Shown piece after piece: positions 19,874-49,600 of a stretch of DNA of 64,000 nt. The notes under the pieces are model-generated. The model saw only the letters and a program-made list of their open reading frames with translations, made no database searches and was not told the origin of the DNA. The translations under genes were made by a program, and so were the position numbers. This DNA is from Haliotis rubra. Lineage: Eukaryota. The DNA lies in contig NW_025766002.1 of NCBI RefSeq assembly GCF_003918875.1, positions 2,232,001-2,296,000 of the forward strand. Reading direction: 5' to 3'. The first letter of the stretch is position 1. Every line of letters starts with the position of its first letter.

Positions 19874-20214
19874 TGGGGTTGTTGGCCTGAAGGTACGGGC
19901 GTAGAAATCTCTGTATCGGCCGAAGTTGGAGCTGGCCTCTGTACGTTAAGGCATGAGCTGACGTCAGAAGGCCCCGTGGCTCCTGCCACTGTCGTAAGGT
20001 TCTCGCCTGAGACAGTGCTGGAGGAATGCATTGCTGAATCTTTATCCACCTGTCGTGAGATACAAACATCATCCCCTGACGAGTGTCGAACAGTGCTCTG
20101 ATGAATTGGAGTTTCTGAATCGATATTAGTTCCGATCCCTTGAAAGTGGAGGAAGCTCATTATGGGATTGGTAATTCAGGTAAAAAGCCATGGGGCCATG
20201 GAAATTCCAAATGG

Positions 20215-20377
20215 ACTGACTGAGTTTAGTTTTACGCCGCTTTTAGCAATATTCCAGCAATATCACGGCGGGGGACACCAGAAATGGGCTTAACACATTG
20301 TGCCCATGTGGGGAATCGAACCCGGGCCTTCGGCGTGACGAGCCAACGCTTTAACCACTAGGCTACCCCACCGCCCC
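20215..20377 (-). mobile_element. SINE family 1 inserted into the DIRS RT
   Basis: TSD AATTCCAAATGGA splits the LPFGI motif. Confidence 0.92.
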
Positions 20378-22389
20378 AATTCCAAATGGAAGGACTTTCC
20401 ATTGGTAGTGATTCCCGTTGAACACGAAGCGAAGGTACTTCTGGTGTTTTGGATGTATCAGAACGTGAAGATAAGCATCCTGAAGATCAAGGCTGATGAG
20501 GAAGTCTCCCTTCTTCAGGATGGAGCGTAAAAGGTTGATAGACACCATCCTGAAGTGAGGCGGTGGAAGGAGGAATCGGGCATTGAATAACTTCATATTG
20601 AAGATGAGCCAGAGTTTGTTGGAATTTTTCTTGGGAACCAAGAAGATGGGGGAGTAGAATCCTGGAGTGACGGCGATGGACCTAAGAGCTCTATCGCGAG
20701 TTTGACTAATAGCATACCTATTGTGGATTGCAGAGTCTGAAGCTGGTCCACAGGATATGAGCGATGAGCCGGATGTGACGTCAGAGGTGGACTGCCAATA
20801 ACGGGTAGCTGATAGCCGTAGAGTAGCAGGTGGGTGACGTACGGATCTTTGAGGAAGGTCCAATTCAGGGCGAAGATCTGCAATCTCCCGCCTAACGGAG
20901 TGTTGTAAATCGGAACGACTGGGGGTGGGAGGTCCCAGTCGTGCGATTGTCTCAAGCAGTCACTGCTTCCCGGCGCTGGTCCCTGGGCCAGAGTTGGTCC
21001 TGGGGGGCGACGGGAGGAACCACCACGACCAGGTCTTTTTCCTCTGGCACAGCCTTGAGTAGATGCGGCAAGAAAAAGATTGCGTAAAACCGGATTGGTA
21101 GGGGGGAACTGTGCAGTTCGACGCTGTTTTAATGAGTCCTGGAGCTGTGACTTCTGTATCTTTAACAGTTCAATCGCGAGTTGAAAGTGGGTTTCTTTAT
21201 CAACTTTATTAGATACTTCTTGGATGCTACCATTGAAGAGGGAGTCAGTAAACCAAGGCTGGTGAAACAGTTCTGTTTTAAAGCGCTCCTTCCATGAAGA
21301 GATGTTAAGGGGTCCACGTCAGCGAACAGCAAGAGTGTAGCCCAAAAAATGACACAACTGATCCAGGATAATTTGGAACTGGTCCAGAGCTAAAGTCATG
21401 CATCCTCGGATGAAAGCGTCTTGATCAGAGTAAGTATGCTCCAGAGCAGTGTTAACAGCGTCGACTGCTGCAATCACGCAACTAATAGATGGCAACGTCT
21501 TTCTCACGGCTGAATCCATGTGAGCCAACTCTCGGTCCTCAATAAGGTAGGGCAAAGCAGCTTGTTTGCCACACAGGGTTCCAATATCCTCATCAACTGT
21601 TGGAGCCGTAGAGATTTTTGCTAGGCCGTGGACATGAGAAGTAGAAGGATTATATCTGGGAGCAGAGAATCCGTCCTTAATTCGTTTCAGGCTCTTGAAA
21701 CCATCATTTAGTGTACTGGATAATTTCAGAATACAAGGTCGAGGTGGTAGGGTGATGGTAGACCAATCCCGGTTCCTTAGGAGTATAAGAGTGATCAAGG
21801 TTATCTGCTGAAGTACTCAAGGGAAGTTGGAGCTTCTCAACAATCCAAAGGAGTACCTGAGGTGTCTCAACTACTGCAAAGCTACCCCCCAGGGGTAGAG
21901 AACATGCGGGAGATGCATGCATGGCTATTTGGACTGGATCAATCTCAGGAGGTGGACCGGATGAAGAGCCAGGGGCTACCGAAGCCGGATGGGCTGGAGT
22001 AGAAGGCTGTATTTGGTTCCAGGCTGAGGTTATAGCCCTGTTCATCATATTTAGATCTGGAGTCGCTGTATGAGTGGGATTGTTATCAGGTTCCCATGAC
22101 TCAGCGATGATCCTAGAGTGAGTTGAAGGATTCTCAGAGCGTGTAGACAGAACATCATAAGAGACTGTAGGCCTATTATTGGTATCAGAGCAATGATCAC
22201 CCGAACGTCGGTCAGAGGAACTGTATCAAGATCTCGATGTGGTAAGTACCGAAGTAGGTTGGTAAGCCGGTGATCTGGATTCCCTAGTATGGCTAGGTGA
22301 TCCAGTATGATATGAAGAACTAGTCCGGGTCGCTGTAGTTCTAGATGGTGATCTGGTTCTGATTGGAGCTCTGGTTCGACCATCTGAAT

Positions 22390-23045
22390 AGGATCGGCCA
22401 TGAGATGTGGATCTGTACAGATGATCTGGATTTGTAAAGTGATCTGGATCGATTCGATGCACTAACTGGAAACTGTGATCGTGATCTGGATCTATAAGGT
22501 GATCTGGATCGAACAGGTGATCTGGTTTGCAGTTGCGATCTGGCTTGATTTGGTGATCTGGATCGGTTAGGTGATCTACTTAGATGTTGTGATCTGGATC
22601 GGTTCGGTGATCTGGATCGGTCTGGCGATCTACTTCGATGTTGTGATCTGGATCGGTCAGGTGACGTAGATCGGTCCGGTGATCCATTCGGTGATCTGGA
22701 TCAGTCCGGTAATCTGATTAAAAGTTGTGATCTGGATCCATTCGGTGATCTGGATCGGTCCGATGATCTACTTCGATGTTGTGATCTGGATTGGTTCGGT
22801 GATCTGGATCTGTCTGGTGATGTGATATCGAAGTTGTGATCTGGACCCGTTTGGTGATCTGGATCGGGTAGGTGATCTGGATTGATGAGGTGATGTGGAT
22901 CGTAGTTGTGCTCTGGATCGTGACTGTGATCTGGATCGGCACGGTGATCTAGATCGGGCTTGTAATGGTGATCTGGATTGTGAAGGTGATCTAGATCGTT
23001 GTGGTGATCTAAAATGATGTGTCGATCTGGATCGGCGATTAGGTG
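22390..23045 (-). repeat. GATCCAGATCAC-based coding repeat (RSRSP units) in DIRS gag
   Basis: Recurring GTGATCTGGATC on the plus strand at about 18-21-bp spacing. Confidence 0.85.
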
Positions 23046-24659
23046 ACAAAACCTGAAGTGTTGATTCATGATCAACGTCCCCCTGCGATGCTGTTGTAGC
23101 CAGCTCCGTCCGGTTCAATGAACTGTGGGGAGACAGTTGGCTGGTTGAACGCGGTTGGCCAGGCTCCAAACAAACTGAGACAGTCGAGGGGATATGTACC
23201 GATGATCTGGATGATGATATTGTCGATCTAAGGTCCCCTGGTAGTGTAGATGGGACAGGCAACAAAGAATTATCGATCACAACCACCCGCGAGTGATCTG
23301 ACGCTGTGGAAGGAGGTGACTGATGCATACGTAATAGGTGCCGAACATCCTCAGATAAGTAAGAATCTGATGAAGCGTCCATAAAATCCTCTTGAACCAC
23401 AGACGTCGCTCTCTTGCGTGAAGGTACGATTTTCTGTTGCTGTAACTTGATACACTTGGCGGGAGTGGGATCAGATTCTGTTGATTTCCTGTCCCTATCG
23501 GCGATTCCCTGGGAGCAAACACGAAGGTAGGCCTTAAAATCCTCATCTATTAGTGAATTACACTTGCCACATCGTTTGTTCCAGTTACATTGTCCAATAC
23601 AGCCACTGCAAGATGATTGAGGGTCGAGGGACGAGCATTGAGCACAAACTTTCCTTTTCCTTGACTGATTATCACCTTTCCCCATGATGTTAGGGTGAAA
23701 TAATGTCCCTAATATACAGCACGTCCACACAGTCGTGCGACAAGAAAGAGAATGATCATTCAAGGTAGTCATGTGGGCAATTAGTGGAGCATGCTGCAAG
23801 CTGTATTAGGAACTAGGAAGCTAATTAAGGAGAGCAGCATGGAGTGCACGGGCGAATGGACAAGGAGGCCTATGGAAAAAAGTTTATAGTCCTTCCACTA
23901 AAAGTCAAAGCAAGAGAGAGAGGTGCAAGTCGTGAGATAGGATAAGTTTAAAAATATGAGATTTTTAAAACCAGGACATAATTTATTGCCAATAAAATAT
24001 ATAATTACATAACTATACGTTCAAATACATGATCAAAATAATTAACAGCACCAATATCAATGATGATACTGATCATTATAAAGTATTCATCATGTACAAG
24101 TGAATTACAATAATACATCTCCACAGACAATTCCATCTGTAACACAGCCATAATCACAGAAATTTCCTTCACAGAGTGATCACATTCCTATTTCAAAACA
24201 TAGGAGTTCCTGCATACTTTAGCGAACAATCTGGCTCTCTCTAGAAATGAGAGACATATTTTTTATTTAAATGCGAGCCCCTCTATACCATAATGTGGAG
24301 AGTTGTCAGAGACCCCAATACTACACTCAGAGGTAGTGAATGTTCTCTTTAATGATTGTCATCGTCAGTGCTTCATGTTGTACACTACATTTCTTGATCA
24401 CCTGTAACAACGTATGTCTTCAGTGTAATTGTGATGTGACCATGGACAACACCAAGATGTTGACAAGACTAGTCTGTGCAAGAACTATGTGTGATCCCTT
24501 TTATGAAACGATACAGAAGTAATACACAGAGTTGATGGCCACAAGGCTTGTCCAAATGCTGCACAAGAATTCTGCAGAGGTAACTTGAGAGCTCATTGGT
24601 TTGAACACCCACTGAAGGGTGTGGCTTGCTTTGTTGGACCGATACCACCAAGTAGCTGA

Positions 24660-24826
24660 AGTGAGTGAGTGAGTATGATTTTACAGTGCTTTTAGCAATA
24701 TTCCTGCAATATCATGGCAGGGGACAACAGAAAAGGGCTTCACAAATTGTACCCATTTGGGAATCGAACCCAGGTCTTCGGTGTGACGACGCGAGCGCCA
24801 TAACCACTAGGCTACCCCACTGACCC
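24660..24826 (-). mobile_element. SINE family 1
   Basis: Consensus match; AGCTGAA flanks both sides. Confidence 0.85.
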
Positions 24827-25663
24827 TCAAAGCAGCTGAACGTATTCATAGGTAATGGAGGAATGCAGTGTGTACATGTAGTGGTGTTCAAGATTACTGC
24901 ACTTATGTCCTGACATGCAGTAAAACAGAACAACTTTGGCACTGATGTGAAGTCTCGTTAAAATCAGATCCCAGGTCTCATTAATGCCCAACAAAGTCCT
25001 GATGACATCCCATTATGATTGGCCAATCATCTGACCAAACACAGACTGGGAAAGTGACAGTCATCATGCACCCTTGTAAAGGTTAACACGGAGTATTCAG
25101 AGTGACAGTGAAAGGCTGTAAGTCTGATCCAGTCAAAAATCATCCCTTTATATCTGGATTCAGTGAGAAAAAACATTTCAAGTGACTTCACATAGCATGG
25201 AAATACTCCAATTCAATTTTGGCCACCAATCAGCCATCCTTTAGTTCAGTTTTCAAATTTTGATTTCATAACATATAAAGCGATTTCTAGAATTGAGGTT
25301 GCTAATATGGAACAATGCTGTAAAGCATGAGAATGCTGTTTTCTGATGAGCTTATGTCAACTTCTAATTATTAGTCATTTCACTGGTCGATCGAAGTTCA
25401 CAAAATGTCTTTCTGATGTGACCTGTACGGGATGTCCTCAGATTTAGATGTTGAGGTAAGGAGCATCAATATCTGATTTTATGAGACTGCATTGCTGTGA
25501 CATTTCAATTTTTAATTTTGGTTGATTATTCAAATAAACATCTAGCGATTCCACTGAAACCGCAACAGCCGACATCTCTTATACATTCAGTCCTGTTTAC
25601 TAATATCATGCACACAAGTCTCAACACACACAGTGACAAGAGTTGACCTAGCCTACACCTATG

Positions 25664-29794: not shown

Positions 29795-32700
29795 ATGGCG
29801 GAGCAGATTCTTCAAGCCGTTCAGGATGTTAACAATGTTGGGTCTTTAGCAGAAGTTGATGCTGTTGTGACCGACTTCCCTGCTGTTGAAGTAGAGGTCC
29901 ATGCGAAGGCCATCCATGAGATCGGAGGTTTGCAGACACTGACAGCAGTGATGACTGAAGCTGAAAACAGTGGGATGGAGGCAGACGCTCTGCTTCCAAA
30001 CAATATAGTCAAGGAGGTCACTCAAGGTCATTCTCACAGGGACTTGGAAGGACAGGAAGGTGTTGATCCTAAAATGCAGATTCTCATTTCTAATGATGAC
30101 AGAGAAAATACTGCTGTATATTTAGTGGATTACAATTACTCGGACAAAGATATGAAGGATCAGATTGTTTCAGGACTGACTGACTCTAGAACGATTAATG
30201 TTTCATTGAAATCTGAAGAGCAGAAATCGGACCAGCTCTCCAGTCAGGAACATCAGCCCTCAGGGTCCTCAGTTGAATGTGGGTCACCTGCTGAGTGTGA
30301 CTCATCAGCTGAAGGTTCCGCCAAGACAGCATCTCCACAGCAAGAAGACAATAGACAGGTCAACCTGGGTGTGTCAGGGACAGGAAAGGTGGAATCTCAC
30401 AACACACGATCTCAACAGGAACTTCTACAGCATGTGGAACTTAGGGGAAAGGATGCAGCTGTTACTCGCTCTGGAAGAAGAGCTGCGAGGTCACCCCAGC
30501 GGAATCTTTTATGTGAGAAATATGGGGCATGTTTTAACCTGATTCCTATGCTTAATGTATCAGTTACATGTTAGAAGTTGTGACCGTTAACCAGCATGAC
30601 GAGTCTTCCGAGGTTTGGATGTACATGTGTTTCTTGTGACTCAGGGACATGGGTGTCTCAGTAGTCTTAATCTCCTTATCTTGCTGGGTTGCTTCCCTTA
30701 GCCATGCCAGGGGCTATGGGGTAGCCTAGTGGTTAAAACATCTGCTCATCATGCCAAAGACCTGGGTTCGATTCCCCACAAAGGTTCAATGTGTGAAGCC
30801 CATTTCTGGTGTCCCCAGGCATGATATTGCTGGGATATTGATAAAAATAGCGTAAAACCCAACTCACTCACTCACTTAGCCATACCAGGATCCTCTTTTA
30901 TATGGGAGCCAGATTTGCCCTAATTGTGTTCTTTTGATTGTCCTTGATTATTTTCCATCTCTGTAGGTTAGTTTCATTGAAATGGTAAAGATCTGTTAGA
31001 CAAGCCCCCTTGTATGTGTTATTTCAAACACTGGAGTTTCCGTATCAATGAATACTTGTACAATGTGTGAAGTCCATTTCTGGTGTCCCCCGCTGTGAAT
31101 ATTGCTAAAAGTGGTATATAACATCCCTCCATCCATCACTCACTCACTCATTTCATCCCTTGTGCTGAGGTTGACCAGTTATGTCAATATTTTAATAGTA
31201 TTTATAGATTTGATTAAAACATGTTGAATCACAATCTGTTGATATATGTTACCGTTTGTGTCTGTGTATTACTGTTGTAATTTGGTATGTTGCACACCCG
31301 TGAAGGTCTGGGTTAGAATTGATCTTCAGTAACCCATGCTTGTCGTAAGAAGCGACTAACAGGATCGGGTGGTCAGGTTCACTGACTTGGTTGACACATG
31401 TCATCGGTTCACAATTGCGCAGATCGATGCTCATGCTGTTGATCACTGGATTGTCTGGTCCAGAGTCGATTATTTACAGACCGCCACCATATAGCTGGAA
31501 TATTGCTGAGTGCGGCGTAAAACTAAACTCACTCACTGGTATGTTGCAGGGTGTCAAGACTGTGGCAAGAGCAATGTCGGCCATTGTCGGAAACATGGCT
31601 CCCTGATTACTGTTCCTGACTCACACGTCCCGACATATGCTCGACTTACGCTGCCATCTGTGCTGGTTATTAAAGTTGGTAGGTAAACGCTGTTCCCACT
31701 GACAAATGTCTGTATATGAAACTTGTACGTGAGGAAGTTGACAAACAAACCTTTGGTGGTAGACAGCTTGGTCCAACAAGTATAAACACAATGGCCTCTA
31801 ACATGATAAAAAGGGATAAGAAAACAATCATAGACACATTAGTTTTCATTTTCTGAATGAGTACTTTTTATTTGACATATTGTGTTCTGTGTGATTTTCA
31901 GGTAGTAAAGGGGAAGGTGTCTTTGCCAAAAAATACATAAAGGCACGCACTCAGTTTGGTCCACTCAAGGCTCCATTCTGTACAGATACAAGCAAGTCAG
32001 ACAAAGGACACTCCGACTTTTACCTTAAGGTATGTTGTAATAAAAATAACCTCTCATAACTAACTTTGAGATACCGGGGTCATATTTGAAAATGTTTGTG
32101 CCGGCTTTGTCAAGGGGGTTAACTCTGCTTGACTTGATTTTATTCAGATGTACTGTTCAATATATGAAGTTCATATGCCTATTAGTGATGAGTATGACAT
32201 CGAGCCTGGCACCAAAGTTAGTAAGATCAGTTTCTGTTGATATATCAATAACAGAACCTACCTATGGTTATGGCACCTGTGGGGGCGGTGTGGTAGCCTA
32301 GTGGTTAAAGTGTTCACCCGTCAAGCCGAAGACTCGGGTTTGATTCCCCACATGGGTACAATATGTGAAGTCCATTTCTGGTGTCCCCCGCCATGATATT
32401 GCTGGAATATTGCTAAAAGCGGCGTAGAACTCACTCACTCACTGTTGCATGTGTCTGTTACTTGTGTTATGAGACAACTGAATTGAATCCAGTAAATCAG
32501 AGTCTGAGACTTGTGTGTCATCGTCACCACAGCGATGTGGAATAGTGTTCACTGACATCTCCGGCACTCATCATAATGTGTGTGTACATTGCAGGGCTAT
32601 GACAGTGATGACGACATGTTGCTGTATGACTTGAGCAGCGAGGCGGAGTGTAACTGGATGATGTTTGTGCAGCCGGCCCAGACCTATACTGACCAGAACA

Positions 32701-35700
32701 TGGCCGCTTATGTGTATGACCGTATGGTCTACTATACAACCATCAAGGTAACAACAACACTGTTGATTCCCTATTCTAAAGTGAAGTTGACTGTACACCA
32801 TCTTTTACCATGTTTGTGTAACAATTAAATATATAGAGGATACTAAATGATCTTTATTTACTAAATCATTTTTATTAAACGAGTTAATGATTTGGTATTG
32901 ATACTAAATCTTTCACAAGTTTGATAAAAATTGTATTTCATGGAAGCGAGTTTAGTATTTTGTTTATTACTCTCCAACATAAAATGATAGAAACTGCCTA
33001 CAGTGTGATGACTCTCAGCTTTCTGCGAGTCAAGCAAGGTCTCATACCTCTGTGACAGAGGTATTAGCATTGTGACGTCATAACTGTAAATCGTTATGAC
33101 ATCATACGTCTAGCGGTATTACACTAGTGTAATATTGCCGTAAAAATATTACACTGCAGTATCTTTCATGGGCGGGTAATAATGATGGATATAATAATTT
33201 GTTGTTGTGCCCTTCTTGTACAACTCTGGTTTGTGTTGTTATTTACATGACACTGGTGTTTTACCATATCTGAACTACTGCTGACTTGCTCATGAAACAT
33301 AACAGTAATTCGTCTTGGTGAAAATAATACATATATGGCATGCAGTATGGCGAATATTATGATGTAGAATGGCTAATGTCATGCAGATATATCATTGCTA
33401 ATGTTATGAAGGTGTGTTGTTATAAAGGTGTGGTATGTTATGCTCTGGTTTGTTATGAGTAAGTGAGTTAGTGAGTCTAGTTTTATGACGTTTTTAGCAA
33501 TATTTCAGCAATTTTAGCAGGGTTTTACGCGATTCAGAAATGTGTGTCCAGTGTATAGAATGGACACAGAAATATACATATACTGTGTCCCCTGGAATGC
33601 ACAATTACTAGTATATTCACTGTTCACAATTTGTTACAAGAAATATCTAGTTCCTGTAATCAAGGTAATCTTTAAACCTTACAGTACAGTCTGCCACATG
33701 ATTCCATCACTTTACAGGACACTCATATTCCCTGTAAGGACCCTGGAATTAGTACGTTTGGTAAAATCTTGACCCCACTGCCCCTGGTATGTCATGAATG
33801 TGTGGTATGTTATGGAGGTGTGGTATGTCATGAATGTGTGGTATGTTATGGAGGTGTGGTATGTTTATGGAGGTGTGGTATGTTATGGAGGTGTGGTATG
33901 TCATGAATGTGTGGTATGTTATGGAGGTGTGGTTAGTCATGAAGGTGTACTATGTCATGAAGGTGTGGTATGTCATGAAGGTGTGGTATGTCATGAAGGT
34001 GTACTATGTTATGAAGGTGTGGTATGTTATGAAGGTGTGGTATGTTATGAAAGTGTGGTATGTCATGAAGGTGTGGTATGTCATGAAGGTGTGGTATGTT
34101 ATGAAGGTTTGGTATGTCATGAAGGTGTGGTATGTTATGGAGGTGTGGTATGTCATGAAGGTGTGGTATGTCATGAAGGTGTGGTATGTTATGAAGGTTT
34201 GGTATGTCATGAAGGTGTGGTATGTCATGGAGGTGTGGTATGTCATGATGGTTTGGTGTGTCATGAAGCTGGGTATGTCATGGAGGTGTGGTATGTCATG
34301 ATGGTTTGGTATGTTATGAAGGTTTGGTATGTCATGAAGGTGTGGTATGTCATGGAGGTGTGGTATGTCATGAAAGTGTGGTATGTCATGAAGGTTTGGT
34401 ATGTCATGAAGGTTTGGTATGTCATGGAGGTGTGGTATGTCATGAAAGTTTGGTATGTCATGAAAGTGTGGTATGTTATGAAGGTGTGGTATGTCATGAA
34501 GGTATGGTATGTCATGGAGGTGTGGTATGTCATGAAGGTGTGTGGTATGTCATGAAGGTGTGGGGTATGTCATGAAGGTTTGGTATGTTATGGAGGTGTG
34601 GTATGTTATGGAGGTGTGGTATGTTATGAATGTGTGGTATGTTATGAAGGTGTACTATGTTATGAAGGTGTGGTATGTTATGGAGGTGTATGTTATGAAG
34701 GTGTGGTATGTTATGAAGGTGTGGTATGTCATGAAGATATAATGCATTATGAAGGTGTGGTACATTATGAAGGTATATTGTTTTGCAGCCGATAGAGTAT
34801 GGGAAGGAGTTGAAGGTGTGGTATGCTGCAGACTATGCAGTGAAGATCGGCATGTCTCTGTTCACTGATGTCCAACAGGAGACAGGGACAGACAAAGGGA
34901 AGCAGGGGAAGCAACACAAAGGAGGTCAGTATCCGCTGGAATCGGGTCCGTCATTGTTACTTCTTCATTTCTTTACTAAGACAAATAAATTGAATGCTGG
35001 TGTGTAATAATTCTCCATCAGTCTCATTAATTTATGTTCCATTTTGATATGATATTTCTCTGCATGAACAGACACAAGACACAGACACCCTTACCCCCCA
35101 AAAAATAATAATAGAAGAAAGGAAGTTGCATCAAGTTTTGAATCAACTAACAAACATCAAGAGTTCTAAATTCTTATATAAACGAGAATGTGTTCAGAGC
35201 AGCAAATGTGAGTTCCTAAGAGTCTTTGTCAGGATATAGTTTCTAACTGATATTACAGGAGTGTGTTATCTGCATTATCTTTGTTTTCACAACTGTTTCA
35301 ATATAATTACCGCCTCCGTGGTGTAGTGGTTATAGCGTCCGCCCGCAGAGCGGAAGGTCGCGGGTTCGATCCCTGACCGCGTCATGCCAAAAGACGTTAA
35401 AATATGGTACTTGTTGGTCCCTGCCTGGTGCTCGGCATTAATGGGTACAACAAGGACTGGTTGGCTCGGAGTCAGTATAATGTTTCTGAGTGGGGTATCC
35501 ATGCTTCACTGCGGCATGGTATCTCAGTGGGCTAGCACTATAAAACCAGCTTAAATCTGGGCTAGTACAAGCAGCCGCACATACACACGCATGCACGTCG
35601 TCATATGAGCGAAATATTCTCAAGAACGACATTACATCCAATTTCACCTCACCTCACCTTCAATTATAATTACATATCACACAATACACAGTGTAACACT

Positions 35701-37648
35701 TGTTTCAGATGATAACATGACAACCCCGCCGGAATTGGAGGTGGATGTAGCAGACAACACTGATGATGAGTTCCAAGTAGCGGAAAATGAAGACGGTGAC
35801 AGTTCATCGGACAGTTACAGTGGGACGCACTGCATCTCGTGTGACACTCAGTTCAAGACCAAAACCCAGCTGTTCAGCCACTCCTGTACCCCGAGGAAGA
35901 CGTCCAGCAAGAGGAAGAGAGGCTCCGGCTCCACCAGGCGGAAAGGCAGTCCCAGGAAGCTGGCCCTAGATGATGATGAGGACGATGATGTGGATGATGA
36001 CGACGAGGAGTATGAGGTAGAGGTCAAGGCCAAGAAAAGCAAGAGGAAGGCAGGACGGAAGTCACAAAATCGATCGAAAGGTAAAACCAAGCGGAAAAGG
36101 AGGGAGAGTAGTGAGAAGAAGAAATATGCGAGAACACCCAAGTTTTCTTGTTCATATTGCCCAGAACAGTTTGCGGCCGAAGACTTTTATCGGGCACATG
36201 AAGCTTCTCACACTGGGAAAAGCGCTTACACTTGTGATGTACCTGACTGTGGGAAGGGCTTTGTGACCAAATTCACTCATTGGAGGCACATGTTGTCTCA
36301 CCGTAAACCCATGAACAGACAGTGTCCATATTGTGATAAGGCATTCAACAGAATGGACCACCTAAAGACTCATCTCAAGACTCACGATCAACATCGGTTT
36401 TCATATCTATGTGACAAATGTGGAAAGTCTTACTTACATAAAAACACCTACGACTATCACATGGCCTTGCATGAAGCCAAAGAAGGCGTGTCTCTTGTGT
36501 GTATGATATGTTCCGCCAAGTATGAAACCAAAGAGCATCTTATCAAACATACACTCACCCACAATAGATACAAGTCTCTTGTTGATACACCCAAGAAACA
36601 TGCGTGTCCAATATGTAATAGAATGTTTGGGACAAATAAGGATGTGAAAAGACACATGGTTGTGCACACTAAAGAGAAGTGTTTTCTTTGTGAGTTATGT
36701 CCTCAGACGTTTGGGAGGAAAGATCATCTACACAGGCATTATAAAACTAACCATTGTAAAGAAGCTAAAAAGGAGAAGCCGGTTGAAGGAGAACAAGTGT
36801 TCAGTTGTCAGCATTGCCCGGAGATATTTCCAAAGAAGAAGCTGCTGACGAACCACGTAAGGTATACACACGAACAGACCATGAGACAACAGCTTCCGGA
36901 GGGAGATGAACATCCACTAGCGCAAGCTGCTGGTGATATCACAGAGGCAGCTGTGACGTCGTCTTCTTACAACCTGTACACCCTCTCCACACCACAGCTC
37001 AACTCCAACAACCCCGTAGCTGTGGCTCCCAATCAGGCAGCTAAAGCATTAGAGCGGTACATCAACACCAACGTGACCACCTCCAGCAATGTGATAACAC
37101 CTCAGACTGTCATGGAGGTGTCTGCTCCAGTGACCTTCATCAACGGCCAGACCAACATGCCCGTAACTGTGATGCCCCAAGGAAGGGAGTGTCCAGATCA
37201 GCTTCAGCAGGTGAAGGATCGACCAGTGTTCCAAGATCAAATGGCACCTCAGCGACAGACTCGACCAATGCCATGGTCGTTCACTGTCATAGAGGAGAGA
37301 GATGACCACAGTTATTCCACAGCACCAGCTCCTGCCTGGACTCCTAAAGTGCCAAACTTTCGTCAAGGGGGAACGTCTGTCGCCGAAGTGGAGACTGCTC
37401 GGTTGCTTCAGTCTGCGCAGACGTCTCATGGCTCTTTCTCAGGACAGTGCAATAACGCCACCACAATGGCTGTGGCCTGGGACACCATGACGGAGTATTT
37501 TGCTGTCCAGCCATGCAATAACATTACAGAGGTCGTGACATCCAACAGTATCGTACAGCAGACGCAAGCCCAGCAGATCACTCAGAACATGGCTCATATT
37601 CCCAGAGGTCATCTCCAGCAAGGCCATGCCCACCATCAAGCTCAATGA
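29795..37648 (+). CDS. PR/SET-domain zinc-finger protein with a PLAG-type C2H2 array, 1067 aa; exons 29795-30512, 31550-31678, 31902-32029, 32595-32747, 34789-34924, 35709-37648
   Basis: In-phase GT-AG junctions (3204 nt). Zinc knuckle WCQDC..C.KHG; PR motifs [28 protein letters not shown]; eight C2H2 fingers in the last exon plus an upstream C2HC-like finger. Confidence 0.92.
30710..30875 (+). mobile_element. SINE family 1
   Basis: Consensus match; TSD TTAGCCAT(G/A)CCAGG. Confidence 0.85.
31295..31536 (+). mobile_element. SINE family 2, full length
   Basis: 12-bp TSD TGGTATGTTGCA (31283-31294, 31537-31548); 3' tail shared with family 1. Confidence 0.9.
32281..32443 (+). mobile_element. SINE family 1
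   Basis: Consensus match with (ACTC)n tail. Confidence 0.85.
33786..34780. repeat. Intronic minisatellite, 18-bp unit ATGAAGGTGTGGTATGT(C/T), about 55 copies
   Basis: Directly visible; a few detached units at about 33405-33442. Confidence 0.97.
35309..35660 (+). mobile_element. V-SINE-like element (family 3), full length
   Basis: tRNA head with A/B boxes, V-domain-like GTCATGCCAAAAGACGTTAAAATATGGTAC...CCTGCCTGG, (CACCT)n tail. Confidence 0.85.
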
Positions 37649-38376: not shown

Positions 38377-38399
38377 TATTTGCCTGTTGATAATTAGTT

Positions 38400-38567
38400 T
38401 GGGTTGGTTGGGGTAGCCTAGTTGTTAAAGCATTCACTCGTCATACCGAAGACCCGGGTCTGATTCCCCACCTAGGTACAATGTGTGAACCCATTTCTGG
38501 TTTCCCCCTCCATGATATTGCTGAAATATTGCTGAAAGCAGCGTAAAACCATACATACTCACTCACT
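38400..38567 (+). mobile_element. SINE family 1
   Basis: Consensus match. Confidence 0.8.
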
Positions 38568-39033: not shown

Positions 39034-39200
39034 AGGGCGAAGGGGTAGCCTAATGGTTCAAGTGTTCACTTGTCACGCCAAAGACCCTGGTTTGATTCCC
39101 CACATGGGTACGTTGTGTGAAGCCCATTTCTAGTGTCCCCCGCTGTGATGTTGTTGGAATATTGTTAAAAGCCATGTAAAACCCAACTTGCTCACTCACT
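39034..39200 (+). mobile_element. SINE family 1
   Basis: TSD CTTCAGCATGTTCAAG. Confidence 0.85.
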
Positions 39201-42200
39201 TCAGCATGTTCAAGACTTGCAGACTTTCACGTACTCATGTTAACCACTCTCAATAACATGTTCAGTTGAAAGTGTTCATAATAAGTCAATGTTTGGATTT
39301 TCATTATCCATACAGTTTTTAGTTCATGTAGAAAGAGGTCATAGTTCATAAGCATGATAAACCTACAGAGACAAAATATTGACTAGAAACATAAAAAGAT
39401 GGATGCTGAGGTATTTTTCTAACACACAATTCATCAGATCTGAATAAATGATATATGCTAGCATGTCACTGGATCTACCTTCGGCTATGAACGTATGCAG
39501 AGATGTAGAGAATAAACTTTACCATCTGGTGGTGCAAACTGAACTGCACATATGTATAGACTTTGAAAGAAAGACTGCTAAGTATTGTCTGTTTGTTTTT
39601 GTTTTGTCTTTAATGACAGAAAATTTCTCCACTTTTTATTGCGCACTGACAAAAGTGCACAAATGAAAGCAACATTTTTTTTAACAACATTACAGAAACT
39701 GTGAGGAGAGAAACTGAATAATGCTGTAAATGGTGAATTAGTAACAAGTCAGAAAAGGCGAATTTTACAGTGGACCAAACATTCAAAGGTCATTTTCAGT
39801 AATCTGTTTTGCCTAAAATGAGCGTTCCACGACACAAAAGAAATTTCTTACCTAGTGTTTTGTGTGTATGATGTATGTTAAATTTTCTGTAAGGGTTTGA
39901 GAGGAGGAAAAATTATATACATGTCACTGTGGCATCCAGGTAGATAGTGTATCTACATTTCATTAAGTTTTCGAATGTATGGCGTATAAAAAATTGGTGG
40001 CTATGTTTCCATGAACCGTGCTTACAATTTATAGCAATGTAGTTGTACATGGTTAAAGTCTGTTTATCAGGTTGAAAGGAAATGGGACTGATCAGGTGGT
40101 AGTATGTTCCCAGGAAGCAGATAAAACACTGCTGTATCTCATCACAGAATTAAGTCTTCCCTTAAGTCAACACTGTATCAGTCTGGTTGGCATTAAAGTG
40201 TAGACTACAATAACACACAAATGTATATTACTGTTTTCATGGCTTGACAAGTCTTAAGGCTGTTTTCGCATGGTTTGAGTTGTCTGTGAAAATGTTCATG
40301 CCTGTTGGTGACCTGATTATGTTGATATTGCAAGGATGGCACAACCACTTGTGAAAGTGTCATGGATTTCAGGTTATATGATGAGATAAGTAAATGATCC
40401 ATTTATTATATATTTCCAGTCTGAAAACCATAGTGTAACTGACTGACACTAGTATGCTAACATGTTATTCCACATGATGTTGTACTGGGATAATTTTGAA
40501 ATACTTGTCAAAGCTGCCAAAACGATTTTAAAATGCCCCCTAATAAAGAAACTGTTTATCATAAACAGTAACATCTCCCTATTCAGCATATATACTGTTC
40601 AAATGATATGACCACCCACTAGCTTTAAATAGTATGGAAGATTAACTATGGTAATATGTAGGAATCAGGTGGTCCTTTCCTTTTATTGTATAAGTTTGGT
40701 CATGCAAAAAGAAACCCAACCCCAGATGCCATATGAAAAGACACAATGTGAAATCAAAACCACCCTGTTGAATGTTCCAAGTTGTCATTAAATCACTGTT
40801 GGCGTTATTTGAAATCAGAATTATTTAGGATTACAGTATACATTTAAGTTACTGGACATCTTTTTAGTGTTGATGATTAACATTGATACTAGTCCATTCA
40901 CTGCTATGCAAAAATCTCATTTTGTAAGGATGTAGTGCACAGATTGAAAGTGATGAACACCCATGTAGAGGAACATTTAAACCTAGTTGTTTGTTGGTGT
41001 CAACAGTTTTAACCTTTTTTCATACAAATACTTGTTAGAACATTTTTGTTTTATTTTGGATGTATTTATTCCTTGAGCAATATGAATCAGAGCTTTATTG
41101 TTATCTTGACCATTCAGTTTACTCACATAGTCAGCCTGTATAGTCTCACCTTAAACCATGTTAGTTTTGTTGCCTTATACAAACCTCTTCCATTAATGCA
41201 TTTCTTATGATTGCCTCTTGTTTTTGTGAATACAATATTTGTTACTTACATTAAATATAAGTTATCTTTATGAAGTTGCCTTTGTCTGTATTCTGGAGCT
41301 AGTAGGGTACCCAGCTGCTTAAGCATATGGTTGTTCAGTGTTTCTCATGGGAACTTCCGGATGCTGCTTGAATATTTTGCCAAAAGTGGCAGTAAACCAA
41401 CACTTAATCATTTCAGTTCCTGATGTGATCTGTGAGTTTGTAAAATATTCACATATTTACAAGAGAGAAAGATTATAATATCTAGTATATATAATCCAGT
41501 TTAACTGTAAATTTAATGGACAGGTTTGTAAGCTGACTGAAACGTTCATATATAACACCTCAGTGAATCATGAAATTAGCTGACTGACTGTACACACTGA
41601 CTTCAATATACATGTACATGTCTAGCACTGTGAGATTGTTGACCTCCGCTGTGTTTTCCAACCAAACCTGTTCTCAGAAAGAGTTGAATTTATTTCACTT
41701 TCTTTATGAGGAATGTTGTCTGAAACAATGTCTGGGGCAATGACATCTGAAAAAGATTTGCCTACATGATTCGTCATGTAACTCTTCTTTTAAACTGATC
41801 TTTGAAACTGAAACTTGCCTCTACACATGATATATCACGGCATGGAAACACACTAAACATATCATTACTGCCATTCTTAACTCATCACTTTCTATCTAGA
41901 GCTGTCAGCAATATGAAAAACCAATGCTGTACGAAAGACCTTCTGTTCGTTTCAGATTATATAGTTATGACAAAACATAACCTGCCTGAGGTCATGAAGA
42001 AATATTCATTGACTTTTCACTTACGTTATCCTTTTAACAATTCTTGCTCACCTTGCACAGGAAACATTACATTCATGCGGTTGACATTGTACAACTCACA
42101 AGTTCAATTACGCTGTAGGAACTTAATCTGTAAAGGAACGTTTTAATACAAGCATCACTTTTAACGCTAACCGTGGAATTGTGACGTGAAACATCTGTGA

Positions 42201-43641: not shown

Positions 43642-46600
43642 TCAAACACATAGGTTGCTCTGACAGCCACCTCGACACTTGGTGCACGGCTGGCCTTTGG
43701 TGTAAGGGTTGAAGCCCATGACGTTGCCCCTGGAGACAAAATCGGTACATGAACACACAGACAAGTATTTGTAAGGATAAAGAAGGGAGATATATATATT
43801 TAGCTATTCTGCTTGGAATCAAAACTTATGAATTTGAACAGAGAGAAGAGAGAATTCAACTTATTTGATTAATTTATACAAACCGCCCTCATATTTTTGG
43901 AATACTGCGGCGTCAAACAACAACGAACCGGAACATGGCGTTATGAAAGCAAGGGAGGCAACTCACGGCGGAGAGTAGAAGCAGGCGAGGAGGTACATAT
44001 CGGGACAGCGTTTGGCGGCACATCCCACGTTCGTGGTGGTGGACCAGATCATCTGTGGAGAAAGTAGCAGCATGGTCATGGTGGTCATGCAAGTAGATGT
44101 GTAGAACTCCCCTGCTGACTAAGTTCAATATATACCTACACCTGGGAGGCTTGGCGCTGCCTTGTGCCGTGATTTCGTCTCCCAACAACCTAAGCCAAAT
44201 AGTTACCTTCAAATGAAGCCCGATATTTTCACAAACTATTCCACGTTTCTGGTCTATTCTACCAAAAGGGCTTACTTCAAAATGCCCCTATCATTTGTCA
44301 AGCCACGTATTGTTTGGTGTTCTTAATCAGGTAACATTGTATGGGGGCTAAAGCTCCTCTCAGCAGGATATAGGTATCGCATAGACCACCTGATCACAGT
44401 CAGCGTTAGTTCTCATCCCTCTCCACATACCGGGCGGTATGATTAGTGGTTAAAGTGTTCGTTCGTCACGCCGAAGACCCAGGTTCTATTCCCCATATTA
44501 TTTGGGTAAAATGTGTGAAGCCGATATCTGGTGTCCCCCGCCGTGGTATAGATGGGATATTGGTAAAAGCGGCGTAAAACGTAACTCACTCACTCTCCAT
44601 GACAGTTATTCGTCCAGTGGTGAGAGCAATAGCACAATAAGTGGGTTACCGGGTTCAGTTCTCAAACTGAGTACCTTGTGCAGTACGCTCTTGCCCCGCA
44701 CACAATATATAATACATGTAGTAAATACATTACAATGCACAAGCAATATCTCGTAATCACAAGTGTCATATGACTTACCTGTGTGTAATGGCCGGTAGCA
44801 GGCGAGAATTCATCCCCGTACTGCCAGCTGTGTTTCTCATTGTACCAGCCGTTGATGCCGTATTCGACGAGGCTGTCGATGTTCATGAGAGACCCTCCGA
44901 CCATAGCGAGGTTCTCCCCCCCCGCACCCCTTGGTGCTCCATCACACAGCGTTGTATCCACGAGTGTGCCTCACTCGCAAGCTGCTTGTCCCACCGCTGA
45001 AGACGTAATCATCATCATCATCATCATCATCATCGATACTGTCATTTTCTTCTTCATAATTGGGGGCGGTGGGGTAGCCTAGTGGTGAGAGCGTTCGCTC
45101 CTCACGCCGAAGGCTCGGGTTCGATTCCCCACATGGGTACAATTTGTGAAGCCCATTTCTGGTGTCCCCCCGCCGTGATATTGCTGGAATATTGCTAAAA
45201 ATCGGCGTAAAACCATAGTCAGTCAGTCAGTCTTCTTCATAATTAATATCATCATCACCATCATCGATTTTATTCTCGTCTTCACCCCTGTTATGAAAGC
45301 GACCACCATCATCATCAACACCGTCCATATCATCGTCCTCGTGACCATTACCAGAAACAATCAGTATCATTATCTTTTTTATCAACAGTATAACCAACGT
45401 TGTCACCATTATGTGATCTTAAACAACATTATATTACAATGATATCTTTTGTTATCTTCTCATTGTTATTATCATCTTAATCACCGACATTATAACACTA
45501 TCATCATCATCATCATCATCATCAATAACGTTTGTATCTTTCAACATCAACAGCTTCATCAATAGGCATCAATGAAGGTTTCTACGTTTTCTAAGATCAT
45601 ATTATTTATACAAACCTCTCTGTACCTAAACACGGAAAGTACGATTGTGAAAGAAGTGTCCCGTTTCTCTGCTTTCCATTCGTGTCCAACTCGTGTTATT
45701 ATGGAAAGTGGTGACGAATGCGCTAGGGAGACGAGTCTCCTTGCAGTTTCGTCGCCACTCGCCCCTTTCCGTAAGCATGACGTTTCCTTTCCGATCAACT
45801 TGTCCCGGACTGACACGAGTTGGTCCCGAAAGGGTTCAACAGCGTACCGTGCCATGACCTGTTTTGACCACTGTTATTGTTAACAACCACTTCACAAAGA
45901 TAAGATCATGTGTTTGAAGAAAGATAGCTTTGTCACGTGGCACCTCAGCCGTGATCGTCTAGAGGTTAGGACTTTGCGTTGTGGCCGCAAGAACCCCGGT
46001 TCGAATCCGGGTCACGGCAGGTGTCTCTATGTTTTAAAGTAATATTTTGACCAAAACTAATGATTGATGAATTTAAGAACTTTATTTTGATTCGGAAATC
46101 AACCCTAGAAGTCCGGACTTATGAGCCAACACGTTAACCTAGTGTTAGGTGAACAGGTAAATCTCAATCTCAATCGAACTCCTCTACCTCCAACCAAAGC
46201 GTGTTTACCATTGGCGGTTCAGACCCTTCAGGATTCGATGTAAGGACATCCGTACTTTTGCATGACACCCAACAAGAAAGCGGGTGAGCGAAAAAATATA
46301 ATTAAAAATAGAAAAATGGTTGTCAGTAATTTTTATGGTTTTAAAAAAATAATTTGTGATGTAGATAGAGTCGCTTTACTTTGGAAACATTTTTTAAAAT
46401 AAAAATAAGAATGAAACAGGTCTGGTTTTCGTCTTATGTACAAGGATAAGAGTGTACTTTTATCGCGTCAGGGCATAAGTTTCCCCAGCAGCGGGCAAAT
46501 TTGAGTTAAGGTAACTTTGTATTAATTTACGCCAGAACGAAAAATCAGGGCGGGCGGGAAATGGAAAACAGAAAAGCATACGTACACCAAAGAACATAGG

Positions 46601-49600
46601 TATGTGTCGTAGGTAGAGAGCCTTTGAGTATTAAAATCTATAAGCGATTTATTTCACATTGGCATAAATTAGCCTCTGAGAACACATATTGGAAGCCATC
46701 CCAGATTATATATAACTGTGTTAACCACATCTGTGACAATACAAATAAAGTTCCATGGCTACGTTTTGTGAAATATATCCTTGATAACTGCGGTCTATCC
46801 TACGTGTTTCTAAATCCGTCTGTATGTTCTACGCCCTGGCTTGTCTCAATGGTCGAAAACACCTATAGAGCCCAGTTTTTCCAAAATTGGAAGTCAAATG
46901 TTGATTCAAGTTCCAAGGGGGATTATTATAAATATTTCAAAACCCAACCAATCTTAGAAAAATATCTTCTTCTTCCCAAAAATATATACTACCCAATTTT
47001 GAAGTTTAGAACATCTAACCATAAAATACCAATTGAGACAGGCCGATGGTTTGGCATTCCACGTGAAGACAGACAATGTCCACTTTGTGAATCATACGCT
47101 GTTGGAGACGAGTTTCACTACTTGTTTAAATATGAAGCTTTTCTCCAATTCCGACGTGAGTCTCTGAACACTAAATACCTAGAATTTCCAAATTTGTCCA
47201 TCTTTAAGAAACTCTTGTCTACTACCAGCATAAGCGACCTTAAAGGCCTTTCTAAATTACTGAACCATGTATTTAATGCATTTAAAAAATGAAATACTGT
47301 TGTTATCTTATATCTTGCTATCGTGTAAGCTGCTGTCTTGTATATTATGTAAATGTATATACGTTTATCTCATGTACCGCCGTTAGCGGTTTGTAGAGAA
47401 TAAAGAGTTTGAGTTTACAGAGCAACCTATGCACATCGCCCGGGGCGAATGACGGGCTCATAATCTCGGTGATTGCGTCATCGCATTCCCATATTACATG
47501 TATATGGTTCATTGATCATGATTTCAAACTGGTGTCCCCCCGCCGTGATATTGCTGGAATATTGCTAAAAGCGGCGTAAAACTAAACTCACTCACTCACT
47601 CAAACTCATATTACTGAGTACGTTGTTAAACAAACAAACCAATCACTGGATAGTCTAGCTCAACGACGGATGAGCCTGGATTCTGTGTTAAACAGCGTGC
47701 CACTAAGTGACCAATGTACACGCACTTCTACAAGATAAGATCAGGTTTTGGAAGAAACAGCACTTTGTCAAGTGGCACTACAGCCGTGATCGTCTAGAGG
47801 TTAGGACTTTGCGTTGTGGCCGCAAGAACCCCGGTTCGAATCCGGGTCACGGCAGGTGTCTATGTTTTTGAAGTAGCATTTTCGACATAAATTATGTTTG
47901 ATGAATTACCAAACTTCGAGTGTTGTCTTCATTAGATGAATGTGTCATGTTTCGTCAGGAAAACAAATAGAGCAAATACAAATATATATAATCTCTACAC
48001 ATATATGTTAGCCTTCATAATTCAAACCATTATGGCGCAATATATGTGTATATTTCAGTCATTATTCTCAACTCTCAATTCTACGTTTTGCGTCCCTATT
48101 GTTGGACTTCTACAGTGGTCTAACGGATAGAAACGTCAGGCCTAAACCCGTTAAAAGATGGTACTTGATGTTTCCCTGCCTGGCGTTCGGCATTATGACG
48201 ATAATACAAGATAGGGTCATTTCAGAGTCATTAAGTGAGTGGGCCAATGCTCTACTGGTATGACTGAGGACTAGATGACGCACCCGCACACACGCGAGCA
48301 TGGAAGTCGCAATAAAACCGGATTGCATTAACCTTGAACGGAACAATAAACCCCACCTGACTTCACCCTATCCTGCGGCTGACGAATAAATAAGTGCTAT
48401 TCCCTAATCATGATTTTCGTCATCTGTCAATCTCTCCCAACTGTCGGCACCGTCTGAAAGACTGTCATGTCTTGTCTTAACCTTTGATCGGTATTCTGCA
48501 TTGACAGCACGTTGACATCTACGCCCTGAAGGATCAAAGATGTATGAGGTTTTAACGGACACTAGTGACCTCCACACTGGTGTTGTTTATGCGATGGAGG
48601 AGTAATATTTTCACCTTGTTTACCCGAACATTTGGTTTCATTTACATTTGATATTGCTCATTAGGACAAATTTTATTATGAACGTAAGTTTTGTCATAGT
48701 GAAATCATTTCAGAATTCTTCAGTTTGGATTGACGGGCTGAAACAAATTGACCTTTATCACCCTCGATTATAAACATATTATACCTACATTCCATTGAGA
48801 CAAACACCAAGGCCGCATTTAGTTTCAGATATATATGAATTTCATTATAATATTTATTATTTATTATTACTGTATATGGCATCACCACTCCATCGTTCCG
48901 ATCGCTGACTTTCCCTCACTCACTCAAATGCCTACCGGGTATTTAGTCGTGGATATTTATCAGCAAATGGAGATATGATTTACTGGATGATCGTGGATAA
49001 AAAATACGGGGTACCAGAGACCATGGATATATCGAAGTTCGTCCCATCCAAAGTTCACTGCATCCATACAGCTGTGGAAAATGTTTTATAAAACAGGCGA
49101 ATATGTCCGATATAAACTTTACATGCGTCTGACATACACTCGTGAATCAAATATACACAGATGCATCTGATATACAAAATGTATATCTGACATAAACACA
49201 TGCATCTGATGCACACATGTGCATCTCATACACAGATGCATCTGACATACACGCAGAAAAGCATTCAAAAACATTTATAACCAGAATGCGATTGTCCTGT
49301 TCTTACCATGAGGTGCATGTCGGCAGCTTGAAGTTCCAGTCGCGCCTGGTTGTGGGCGGTGAGCAGTTGTTGGATGTGTCCTTGCGTCAAACCATATTTG
49401 GACGAGGCTCCTCCCGTACCGGAAGTCGGCGGCAAGGCAGGAATGACACTGCGGCCACTGTTAACTCTGGGTTGAATAGTACTTCTCTGATTTTGGTTGA
49501 TGATGTCCATTCCATTTAATCCAAACTGACTTCCAAATGATTGAAATACATCCGGGATTCTTTGTCGGCGAACCTGTTGCCTCCGTTGAGTGGTTCTCTG

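Follow-up and report, generated by a model that had tools for sequence, protein, structure and literature searches.

A predicted abalone gene joining a PR domain to PLAG-type zinc fingers, a probable orthologue of a bilaterian-wide family ancestral to vertebrate PLAG1, PLAGL1 and PLAGL2

Among the vertebrate PLAG genes, PLAG1 and PLAGL2 act as oncogenes and regulate growth, and PLAGL1 is a tumour suppressor subject to imprinting. To our knowledge, all three have been regarded as plain zinc-finger factors confined to vertebrates. A gene of the abalone Haliotis rubra, located in a window of 64,000 nucleotides (the whole stretch of contig NW_025766002.1 that was analysed), is predicted to combine PLAG-type fingers with a zinc knuckle and a PR (SET-like) domain. 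The locus raises the question of the origin of this combination. A preliminary description proposed either that the PLAG regulators descend from a PRDM protein that lost its PR domain or that the abalone gene is a lineage-specific fusion. As judged by sequence comparison, the gene is very probably an orthologue of a bilaterian-wide family, here given the newly coined name 'PR-PLAG', which would be the ancestral source of vertebrate PLAG1, PLAGL1 and PLAGL2.

The predicted splice model consists of six coding exons on the forward strand, at positions 29795–37648, with 3204 nt corresponding to 1067 codons and a stop codon. All introns are of the GT-AG type, their phases are consistent and internal stops are absent from every exon. 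The features of the gene are as follows.

29795–30512, + strand: coding exon 1, with the start codon and 239 codons of an N-terminal region lacking a recognised domain
31550–31678, + strand: coding exon 2, zinc knuckle C-x2-C-x8-C-x2-H-G, then a strand leading into the PR domain; dN/dS 0.08
31902–32029, + strand: coding exon 3, opening part of the PR domain, including GVFAKK and TQFGPL; dN/dS 0.05
32595–32747, + strand: coding exon 4, core of the PR domain, NWMMFV ... YYTTIK; dN/dS 0.06
33785–34736, no strand assigned: 18-bp minisatellite of about 53 copies, non-coding, in intron 4
34789–34924, + strand: coding exon 5, in which the PR domain ends ([10 protein letters not shown]) and the linker starts, with a phase-1 donor; dN/dS 0.08
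35709–37648, + strand: coding exon 6, from the linker through all fingers and a Q/T/A-rich C-terminal region to the stop codon; dN/dS 0.08
35831–35887, + strand: lone C2HC finger, after the PR domain and before the finger array
35969–36133, + strand: acidic run and, after it, a stretch rich in Lys/Arg, which is likely to be a nuclear localisation signal judging by composition only
36143–36754, + strand: seven PLAG-type C2H2 fingers, F1–F7, assigned by similarity to PLAG1
36800–36871, + strand: eighth C2H2 finger, downstream of the seven-finger array and absent from vertebrate PLAG proteins

Exon 1 ends in phase 1 at the donor TAT/GTGAGA, and the split codon encodes the Trp of the W-C-x2-C knuckle. 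The acceptor of exon 6 (TTTCAG/AT) is in phase with exon 5; the junction 34924/35709, as earlier proposed, coincides exactly with the donor of exon 5 and the acceptor of exon 6. The reading of the locus as one in-phase gene that encodes a PRDM4/10/15-type knuckle, a PR domain and fingers is supported by six GT-AG exons with matching phases. An orthologue from Haliotis asinina (P0002, 1066 aa) has a database model with an exon structure identical to that of the window gene; it served as a stand-in for whole-length comparisons, and the exons of the window were compared one by one. Exon 1 shares 85% amino acid identity with residues 1–243 of P0002 (dN/dS 0.39) and exon 6 shares 95% identity with residues 420–1066. 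The window gene is an ordinary conserved gene that databases already contain. Logan contig L001, which carries a 96%-identical last-exon ORF, was considered as a transcript; it extends 25 nt into the intron and is genomic. Sequences P0255, P0330 and P0280, considered as transcript sources, all originate from genome assemblies. The minisatellite in intron 4 is responsible for long spurious ORFs there, and a scan of neighbouring ORFs for synteny clues revealed only a reverse-transcriptase fragment.

The PR domain is encoded by three separate small exons, each of which is recognised by the Pfam profile PRDM2_PR: exon 3 with an E-value of 2.9e-5 (profile positions 10–55), exon 4 with 1.9e-13 and exon 5 with 1.8e-3 (profile positions 96–121). 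The knuckle, of the PRDM4/10/15 type, is present directly N-terminal to the PR domain. Exon 2 matches Zn_ribbon_PRDM4 (PF18445) weakly, below the cut-off (15.6 versus 25.8 bits; E 0.014); in an alignment with PLAGL1 proteins containing a PR domain and with PRDM10, the knuckle residues W, C, C, C, H and G do not vary. The closest solved relative of exon 4 is the PR domain of PRDM10 (3ihx, E 2.5e-12), and for the H. asinina orthologue the match to the PR structure of PRDM10 has an E-value of 7.6e-31. A fold model of the H. asinina PR region, of moderate quality (pLDDT 70), retrieved PRDM PR domains at all of ranks 1–28. The knuckle and PR exons have a dN/dS of 0.07, which corresponds to strong purifying selection.

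The three catalytic tyrosines of PRDM9 are those of FGPY, IFY and VWY. The abalone protein has FGPL, with Leu in place of the first of them, and retains the other two (YYTT, KVWY); the full three-tyrosine set of a PRDM9-like active PR/SET lysine methyltransferase is therefore not present. From this substitution the preliminary description suggested that the domain may be catalytically dead. Leu also occupies this position in PRDM1 and PRDM4 alignments. The corresponding motif is FGPY in turtle and alligator PLAGL1 and FGPF in deuterostome invertebrates. The abalone PR domain is more probably a protein- or chromatin-interaction module than an active lysine methyltransferase.

The 643-aa ORF at 35717–37648 holds all four finger motifs quoted in the preliminary description, and 6–8 C2H2 fingers are recognised by Pfam in the last exon. 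The seven PLAG-type fingers noted earlier are present; the array is not limited to them, since it is preceded by the lone C2HC finger and followed by the eighth C2H2 finger. An extra finger after the array is also found in Aplysia. The lone C2HC finger occupies the same place in alignments with turtle PLAGL1 and PRDM10. The best named matches of the fingers are vertebrate PLAG proteins (about 45% identity, 96% coverage), with E-values of about 1e-49 in a database of 5.8 billion proteins, far beyond chance. Against coelacanth PLAG1, the window fingers show 44% identity over 228 aa with three gaps (E 6e-59), and the PLAG1 motifs cited in the preliminary description ([34 protein letters not shown]) all occur in this alignment. 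The fingers score 192 bits against PLAG1 and 75 bits against PRDM10 fingers; a PLAG-array profile gives 317 bits on the H. asinina orthologue, 180–370 on PLAG-type arrays and 55–100 on PRDM10-type arrays. A PDB sequence search with the fingers returned only generic C2H2 matches and no PLAG structure.

In PLAG1, fingers 6 and 7 bind the GRGGC core and finger 3 the G cluster (PMC12764072). At their DNA-contact positions, F6 (T, K, D, R) and F7 (R, D, H, R) of the abalone protein carry the same residues as PLAG1, PLAGL1 and PLAGL2, and three of the four contacts of F3 match (R, D, H, T versus R, D, H, N in PLAG1). The contact residues of F2 differ from those of PLAG1, as does the remaining one of F3; the second half of the binding motif may therefore diverge. 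The abalone protein would be a sequence-specific transcription factor, with F6–7 on a GRGGC-like core and F3 on a G-rich cluster, as in PLAG1. The C-terminal PLAG motif LP(R/H)FHQAF(Q/R), found in amphioxus, echinoderm, hemichordate, crustacean and vertebrate family members, cannot be recognised in Haliotis, which ends in ...HAHHQAQ; its absence is treated as a lineage loss and the motif as a non-defining feature.

The arrangement of knuckle, PR domain and finger array is found in molluscs, a brachiopod, an annelid, crustaceans, insects, a tardigrade, echinoderms, a hemichordate and amphioxus; with the lone finger included, it extends over at least nine phyla and non-mammalian vertebrate PLAGL1. 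Separate trees were built for the fingers and for the PR domain. In the former, PLAG-type and PRDM10-type arrays are split with 100/100 support and Haliotis is on the PLAG side, inside a gastropod clade (99/99) that matches the species order; amphioxus and vertebrate PLAG proteins compose their own clade (84/84) inside the PLAG-type group. The top matches of the PR domain are 'PLAG1-like' proteins of amphioxus, a crinoid, a hemichordate and a starfish. In the PR tree, Haliotis groups with amphioxus, echinoderm, hemichordate, annelid and brachiopod 'PLAG1-like' proteins and with shark, turtle and alligator PLAGL1 (98/95), and PRDM10 constitutes a clade of its own (96/93) with Haliotis outside. 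The 98/95 clade includes a beetle protein of uncertain identity and leaves out four arthropod PR-PLAG proteins; constraining all PR-PLAG sequences to one group lowers the log-likelihood by 11.3 units (AU p 0.0875), an arrangement that is not rejected, but not comfortably accommodated. Haliotis branches are long (0.75–1.0). A further branch with a support of 98 unites the PR domains of PR-PLAG, PRDM10 and PRDM15, with PRDM4 outside. The two trees are mutually consistent: the fingers group with PLAG and not with PRDM10-type arrays, and the PR tree agrees.

The premise of the preliminary description that vertebrate PLAG1, PLAGL1 and PLAGL2 lack a PR domain does not survive for non-mammals, since both knuckle and PR domain are present in database PLAGL1 gene models from a shark, several turtles and alligator. 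A lamprey PLAG1-like database model begins within the PR domain. The H. asinina protein and turtle PLAGL1 are collinear through the knuckle, PR domain, lone finger and seven fingers (35% identity over 559 aa, E 2e-96), and the positions of the PR introns in abalone coincide within a few residues with those in turtle PLAGL1, whose gene structure was taken from the Mauremys genomic locus. Abalone and vertebrate PLAG proteins share seven collinear C2H2 fingers with 44–46% identity. Unlike the shark, turtle and alligator proteins, mammalian PLAGL1 and all PLAG1 and PLAGL2 proteins examined are devoid of knuckle and PR domain, and their array begins within the first 40 residues. The abalone protein differs from vertebrate PLAG proteins in its 239-aa N-terminal extension, in the eighth finger and in the lack of a recognisable LPRFHQAFQ C-terminus; its fingers are encoded in one exon, whereas those of turtle PLAGL1 are encoded in two.

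It is very improbable that the gene is the abalone orthologue of PRDM10 or PRDM15 with fingers that merely resemble those of PLAG. Such a reading draws on the automatic 'PRDM10' names of proteins from Patella, Lingula, Octopus and Biomphalaria, on PRDM10 being the best solved relative of the PR exon and on the collinearity of PRDM10 with PR-containing PLAGL1 through the knuckle, PR domain, lone finger and seven fingers (28% identity). The zinc-knuckle PRDM proteins (PRDM10, PRDM15 and PRDM4) indeed share with the abalone protein a W-C-x2-C knuckle immediately ahead of the PR domain; the abalone PR domain is 44–47% identical to that of PRDM10, which also has a lone finger after it, and PRDM10 fingers 2–8 align with the PLAG array (a human PRDM10 entry in one match list was left out of the analysis). 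PRDM10-type proteins, however, have 10–14 fingers, other contact residues and far lower scores on the PLAG-array profile, and they occupy their own clade; the Haliotis gene shows neither this number of fingers nor this placement. Moreover, a distinct PRDM10-type protein with 10–14 fingers occurs in Haliotis cracherodii (P0419) and in each of Patella, Lingula, Octopus and Biomphalaria. Both types coexist, in the same species or genus, in Haliotis, Aplysia, Patella, Biomphalaria, Plakobranchus and Octopus, and likewise in Lingula, Owenia, Anabrus, Asterias, Anneissia and Branchiostoma. The trees, the profile scores and the separate Haliotis protein all contradict a PRDM10/15 orthologue. The presence of a separate PRDM10 in Haliotis and at least 11 other PR-PLAG species excludes both PRDM10 orthology and a mollusc-specific fusion. 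A fusion of a PR-encoding gene with a PLAG-like finger gene, in molluscs or in abalone, would agree with the missing PR domain of mammalian PLAG proteins, but it is hardly credible given the recurrence of the same layout, lone finger included, across phyla and in non-mammalian PLAGL1, which would need independent fusions in many lineages, and given the concordant trees and the PR intron positions common to turtle PLAGL1. Of the two origins proposed at the outset, fusion is accordingly rejected, and descent from a PRDM protein is strongly supported by the layout in many phyla and by the agreeing trees.

Two adjoining transcription units, a short knuckle-PR gene (exons 1–5) and an independent finger gene starting from ATG 35717, might also have been wrongly joined by gene prediction, which is unlikely. 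An ATG 8 nt inside exon 6 does open the 643-aa ORF, and database isoforms with one part only exist: a crayfish X2 model of 659 aa and an amphioxus-like protein with a PR domain and without fingers. The donor of exon 5 and the acceptor of exon 6, on the other hand, are canonical and in phase, and the reading frame stays open over the region of the junction; exon 5 is free of stops up to its donor, and read-through would meet a stop 80 nt further on (35005–35007), giving a 27-codon tail. In many species, independent annotations unite both parts. The linker after the PR domain is retained at the N-terminus of salamander PLAGL1, and it therefore belongs to the PLAG gene. An additional PR-less isoform could exist and would be compatible with the joined gene.

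Under PR-PLAG orthology, the protein would be ordered, from the N- to the C-terminus, as zinc knuckle, PR domain, C2HC finger, charged linker, seven PLAG-type fingers and a low-complexity tail. Vertebrate PLAG1, PLAGL1 and PLAGL2 would derive from the PR-PLAG family, the knuckle and PR domain having presumably been kept in PLAGL1 of sharks, turtles and crocodilians and lost in PLAG1, PLAGL2 and mammalian PLAGL1. PRDM10 would represent a separate sister family that split off before the divergence of protostomes and deuterostomes.

Pairs of PR-plus and PR-minus forms are known for PRDM genes, namely RIZ1/RIZ2 of PRDM2 and MDS1-EVI1/EVI1 of PRDM3, where, as in the PLAG case, one locus or family gives rise to forms with and without the PR domain. 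The PLAG counterpart of this duality extends across paralogues and lineages, and possibly isoforms (ATG 35717; the crayfish X2 model); unlike in the PRDM2 and PRDM3 pairs, the gene structure of PLAG1, PLAGL2 and mammalian PLAGL1 fixes the absence of the PR domain. A speculative and rather doubtful extension is that PLAG1, PLAGL1 and PLAGL2 are what remains, without the PR domain, of a fifteenth PRDM subfamily that spans the bilaterians and is new to the PRDM literature, that the PR domain of PLAGL1 was lost only toward mammals through a downstream promoter shift tied to the gain of the imprinted promoter, and that abalone may make both PR-plus and PR-minus forms, the latter from ATG 35717. If true, the PRDM2/PRDM3 duality would be extended to the PLAG pair of tumour suppressor and oncogene.

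A literature search for a link between PLAG proteins and the PR domain found no paper describing it; in the accessible part of a PRDM survey of 2016, 14 subfamilies are distinguished and PLAG is nowhere mentioned (PMC4760075). The results indicate an origin of the PLAG family as a PRDM-type protein before the bilaterian split, and the PRDM catalogue would gain a subfamily. Misleading automatic names can be corrected, including 'PRDM9-like' for the H. asinina orthologue and 'PRDM10' for the orthologues of Patella, Lingula and Octopus. Invertebrate models for ancestral PLAG function would thereby be provided, and the question is raised of what the PLAG family lost along with the PR domain.

The abalone gene model consists of six coding exons on the forward strand, 3204 nt in total (1067 codons and a stop). 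The introns are all GT-AG, the phases are compatible (0/1/1/0/0/1 bases carried in at exons 1–6) and none of the six exons has an internal stop in the gene's reading frame. Pfam domains were searched with the exons singly.

Coding exons and encoded features of the abalone gene
29795-30512, plus strand: coding exon 1 of the in-phase GT-AG model
31550-31678, plus strand: coding exon 2; weak PRDM4-type zinc-ribbon match (Pfam)
31902-32029, plus strand: coding exon 3; PRDM2_PR, profile positions 10-55 (Pfam)
32595-32747, plus strand: coding exon 4; PRDM2_PR, profile positions 51-108 (Pfam)
34789-34924, plus strand: coding exon 5; PRDM2_PR, profile positions 96-121 (Pfam)
35709-37648, plus strand: coding exon 6; six to eight C2H2 fingers (Pfam)
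35831-35887, plus strand: lone C2HC finger, in exon 6
Between the lone finger and the seven-finger array, plus strand: acidic, then basic linker, in exon 6
36143-36754, plus strand: seven fingers, in exon 6
36800-36871, plus strand: eighth finger, in exon 6
After the eighth finger, plus strand: Q/T/A-rich tail, in exon 6

At the level of sequence, this predicted model bears out the preliminary description, which had placed a PR domain and PLAG-type fingers in one gene: the proposed junction 34924/35709 matches the exon 5/exon 6 boundary, and the four finger motifs quoted are all correct and present in the window. An ATG 8 nt into exon 6 (35717), conserved in Haliotis asinina, could be the start of a PR-less isoform if intron 5 has a promoter.

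The finger stretch matches P0002, a 1066 aa H. asinina protein named 'PRDM9-like' (95% identity), in which each exon junction of the abalone model is reproduced. In comparison with the H. asinina locus, exon 1 has a dN/dS of 0.39, exons 2–6 each have 0.05–0.08 and the pooled knuckle and PR exons 0.07, so all parts of the gene are coding and constrained. The related contigs examined for transcript origin are genomic. The abalone gene is a conserved, ordinary gene of its genome.

Intron 4 contains a minisatellite (33785-34736; 18-bp unit, about 53 copies, 88% matches) ending near the exon 5 acceptor; the long ORFs of this intron are an artefact of the minisatellite. In H. asinina the array spans no more than about 100 bp, which points to its recent expansion or contraction. 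A dispersed SINE-like repeat of about 160 bp, abundant in the H. asinina locus, has two copies within introns 1 and 3.

Copies of the SINE-like repeat
20209-20377
24657-24827
30713-30878
32276-32452
38399-38567
39039-39207
44444-44595
45060-45229
47526-47601

A second repeat (31336-31538) overlaps the element placed at 31295-31371 by the preliminary description. On the minus strand, a GC-rich block (20363-23799) contains several long ORFs and is probably a decayed LINE, since one ORF has a reverse-transcriptase (RVT_1) fragment (E 1.3e-5). The region at about 43900-47900, minus strand, aligns to positions 21535-25102 of the H. asinina locus contig L002, where that species has a CAP-domain (CRISP/PR-1 type) gene.

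The finger array is of PLAG type. In a search of a 5.8-billion-protein database, the named matches after molluscs were vertebrate PLAG1, PLAGL2 and PLAGL1 (about 45% identity with 96% of the array covered, E about 1e-49), and alignment with coelacanth PLAG1 is finger-for-finger (44% identity, three gaps, E 6e-59). A PLAG-array profile scores 180–370 bits on PLAG-type proteins (317 for the abalone orthologue) and only 55–100 bits on PRDM10-type proteins, molluscan ones included. In the maximum-likelihood array tree the two types are separated at 100/100; Haliotis lies within a gastropod clade (99/99) that branches as in the species tree, and amphioxus and vertebrate PLAGs are united at 84/84. 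PLAG1 reads the GRGGC core with fingers 6 and 7 and the G cluster with finger 3 (PMC12764072). At helix positions -1, 2, 3 and 6, the abalone fingers 6 and 7 have the same residues as PLAG1, PLAGL1 and PLAGL2, and finger 3 differs at one position. Domain content, conservation and the identical DNA-contact residues suggest that the protein would act in the nucleus as a sequence-specific transcription factor, recognising a bipartite site like that of PLAG.

The knuckle and PR region of P0002 best matches 'PLAG1-like' proteins of amphioxus, two crinoids, a hemichordate and a starfish, all with a PR domain, followed at equal scores by vertebrate PRDM10 and turtle PLAGL1. A knuckle and PR domain open turtle PLAGL1 isoform X2, which aligns with P0002 through knuckle, PR domain, lone finger and seven fingers (35% identity, 559 aa, E 2e-96). 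An exhaustive profile search gave 189 cluster representatives at E < 1e-30, a sample of which was named.

Sampled proteins with a PR domain and PLAG-type fingers
Molluscs: Aplysia, Nucella, Biomphalaria, Plakobranchus, Octopus, Patella, Potamilus
Other lophotrochozoans: Lingula, Owenia
Ecdysozoans: crayfish, porcelain crab, katydid, stick insects, tardigrade
Deuterostomes: echinoderms, hemichordate, amphioxus
Vertebrates: PLAGL1 of sawshark, turtles, alligator

In the genome of Mauremys, PR and finger exons share a strand, with the PR exons no more than 12 kb upstream, and the three introns within the PR domain occupy the abalone positions to within a few residues. A lamprey PLAG1-like model starts inside the PR domain. 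The predicted structure of the PR region has moderate confidence (pLDDT 70), and ranks 1–28 of its matches are exclusively PRDM PR domains. In a PR tree rooted on PRDM4, Haliotis, other molluscs, Lingula, Owenia, deuterostome invertebrates and vertebrate PLAGL1 form a clade (98/95); PRDM10 forms a distinct one (96/93) with protostome and deuterostome members. Four arthropod PR-PLAG sequences fall outside the 98/95 clade; a tree in which every PR-PLAG sequence is constrained to one clade is not rejected (AU p 0.0875). As judged from these comparisons, the PR domain and PLAG fingers belong to one old gene.

The preliminary description had offered two readings, descent of PLAG from a PRDM or a lineage-specific fusion, on the premise that vertebrate PLAGs have no PR domain. 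The premise has to be corrected, given the PR domains of sawshark, turtle and alligator PLAGL1, and the fusion is rejected by the occurrence of such proteins from molluscs to vertebrates. Descent from a PRDM is supported by this wide distribution and by the PR and finger trees; the fingers do not group with PRDM10/15, PRDM10-type arrays being a separate clade, and the PLAG assignment stands. Identity with PRDM10 was also considered and rejected, as Haliotis cracherodii has a separate true PRDM10-type protein; such proteins have 10–14 fingers and 1000–1650 aa. Both types coexist in Aplysia, Patella, Biomphalaria, Plakobranchus, Octopus, Lingula, Owenia, Anabrus, Asterias, Anneissia and Branchiostoma, and their separation therefore predates the protostome–deuterostome split. 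PRDM10 is still collinear with PR-bearing PLAGL1 at 28% identity, which makes PR-PLAG and PRDM10 old paralogues.

PRDM15-type PR domains (database proteins P0268, P0304 and P0301) cluster together, starfish and crinoid sequences included, apart from the PRDM10 clade, which has invertebrate members of its own. The PRDM10/PRDM15 split has been proposed as a vertebrate duplication (PMC4760075); the invertebrates in both groups suggest an older one.

Some relatives lack a part. The amphioxus-like P0239 (481 aa) combines the PR domain with the PLAG C-terminal motif but has no fingers, and crayfish (Procambarus) isoform X2, P0392, falls 120 aa short of the full-length form; isoforms without one part may be characteristic of this family. 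In the PLAGL1-like protein P0086 of the salamander Pleurodeles, the N-terminus corresponds to the linker found after the PR domain in turtles, and the copy of the lone finger has decayed, the cysteines being gone; this looks like a remnant after PR loss.

PRDM9 has three pocket tyrosines, whose roles come from structural work on that protein. The abalone PR domain keeps two and has Leu in place of the first; PRDM1 and PRDM4 also have Leu there. The residue at this position is Tyr in the PLAGL1 of turtle and alligator and Phe in deuterostome invertebrates. This pattern tips the balance modestly towards a non-catalytic scaffold role over enzyme activity.

Public databases already contain proteins of this family, with automatic names that are inconsistent. 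In the literature searched, no paper was found that connects PLAG with a PR domain, though a published account may exist elsewhere. PLAG goes unmentioned both in the main survey of Prdm evolution, which defines 14 subfamilies (PMC4760075), and in a survey of bivalve PRDMs. The interest of the abalone gene lies in the light that it sheds on the origin of the PLAG family.
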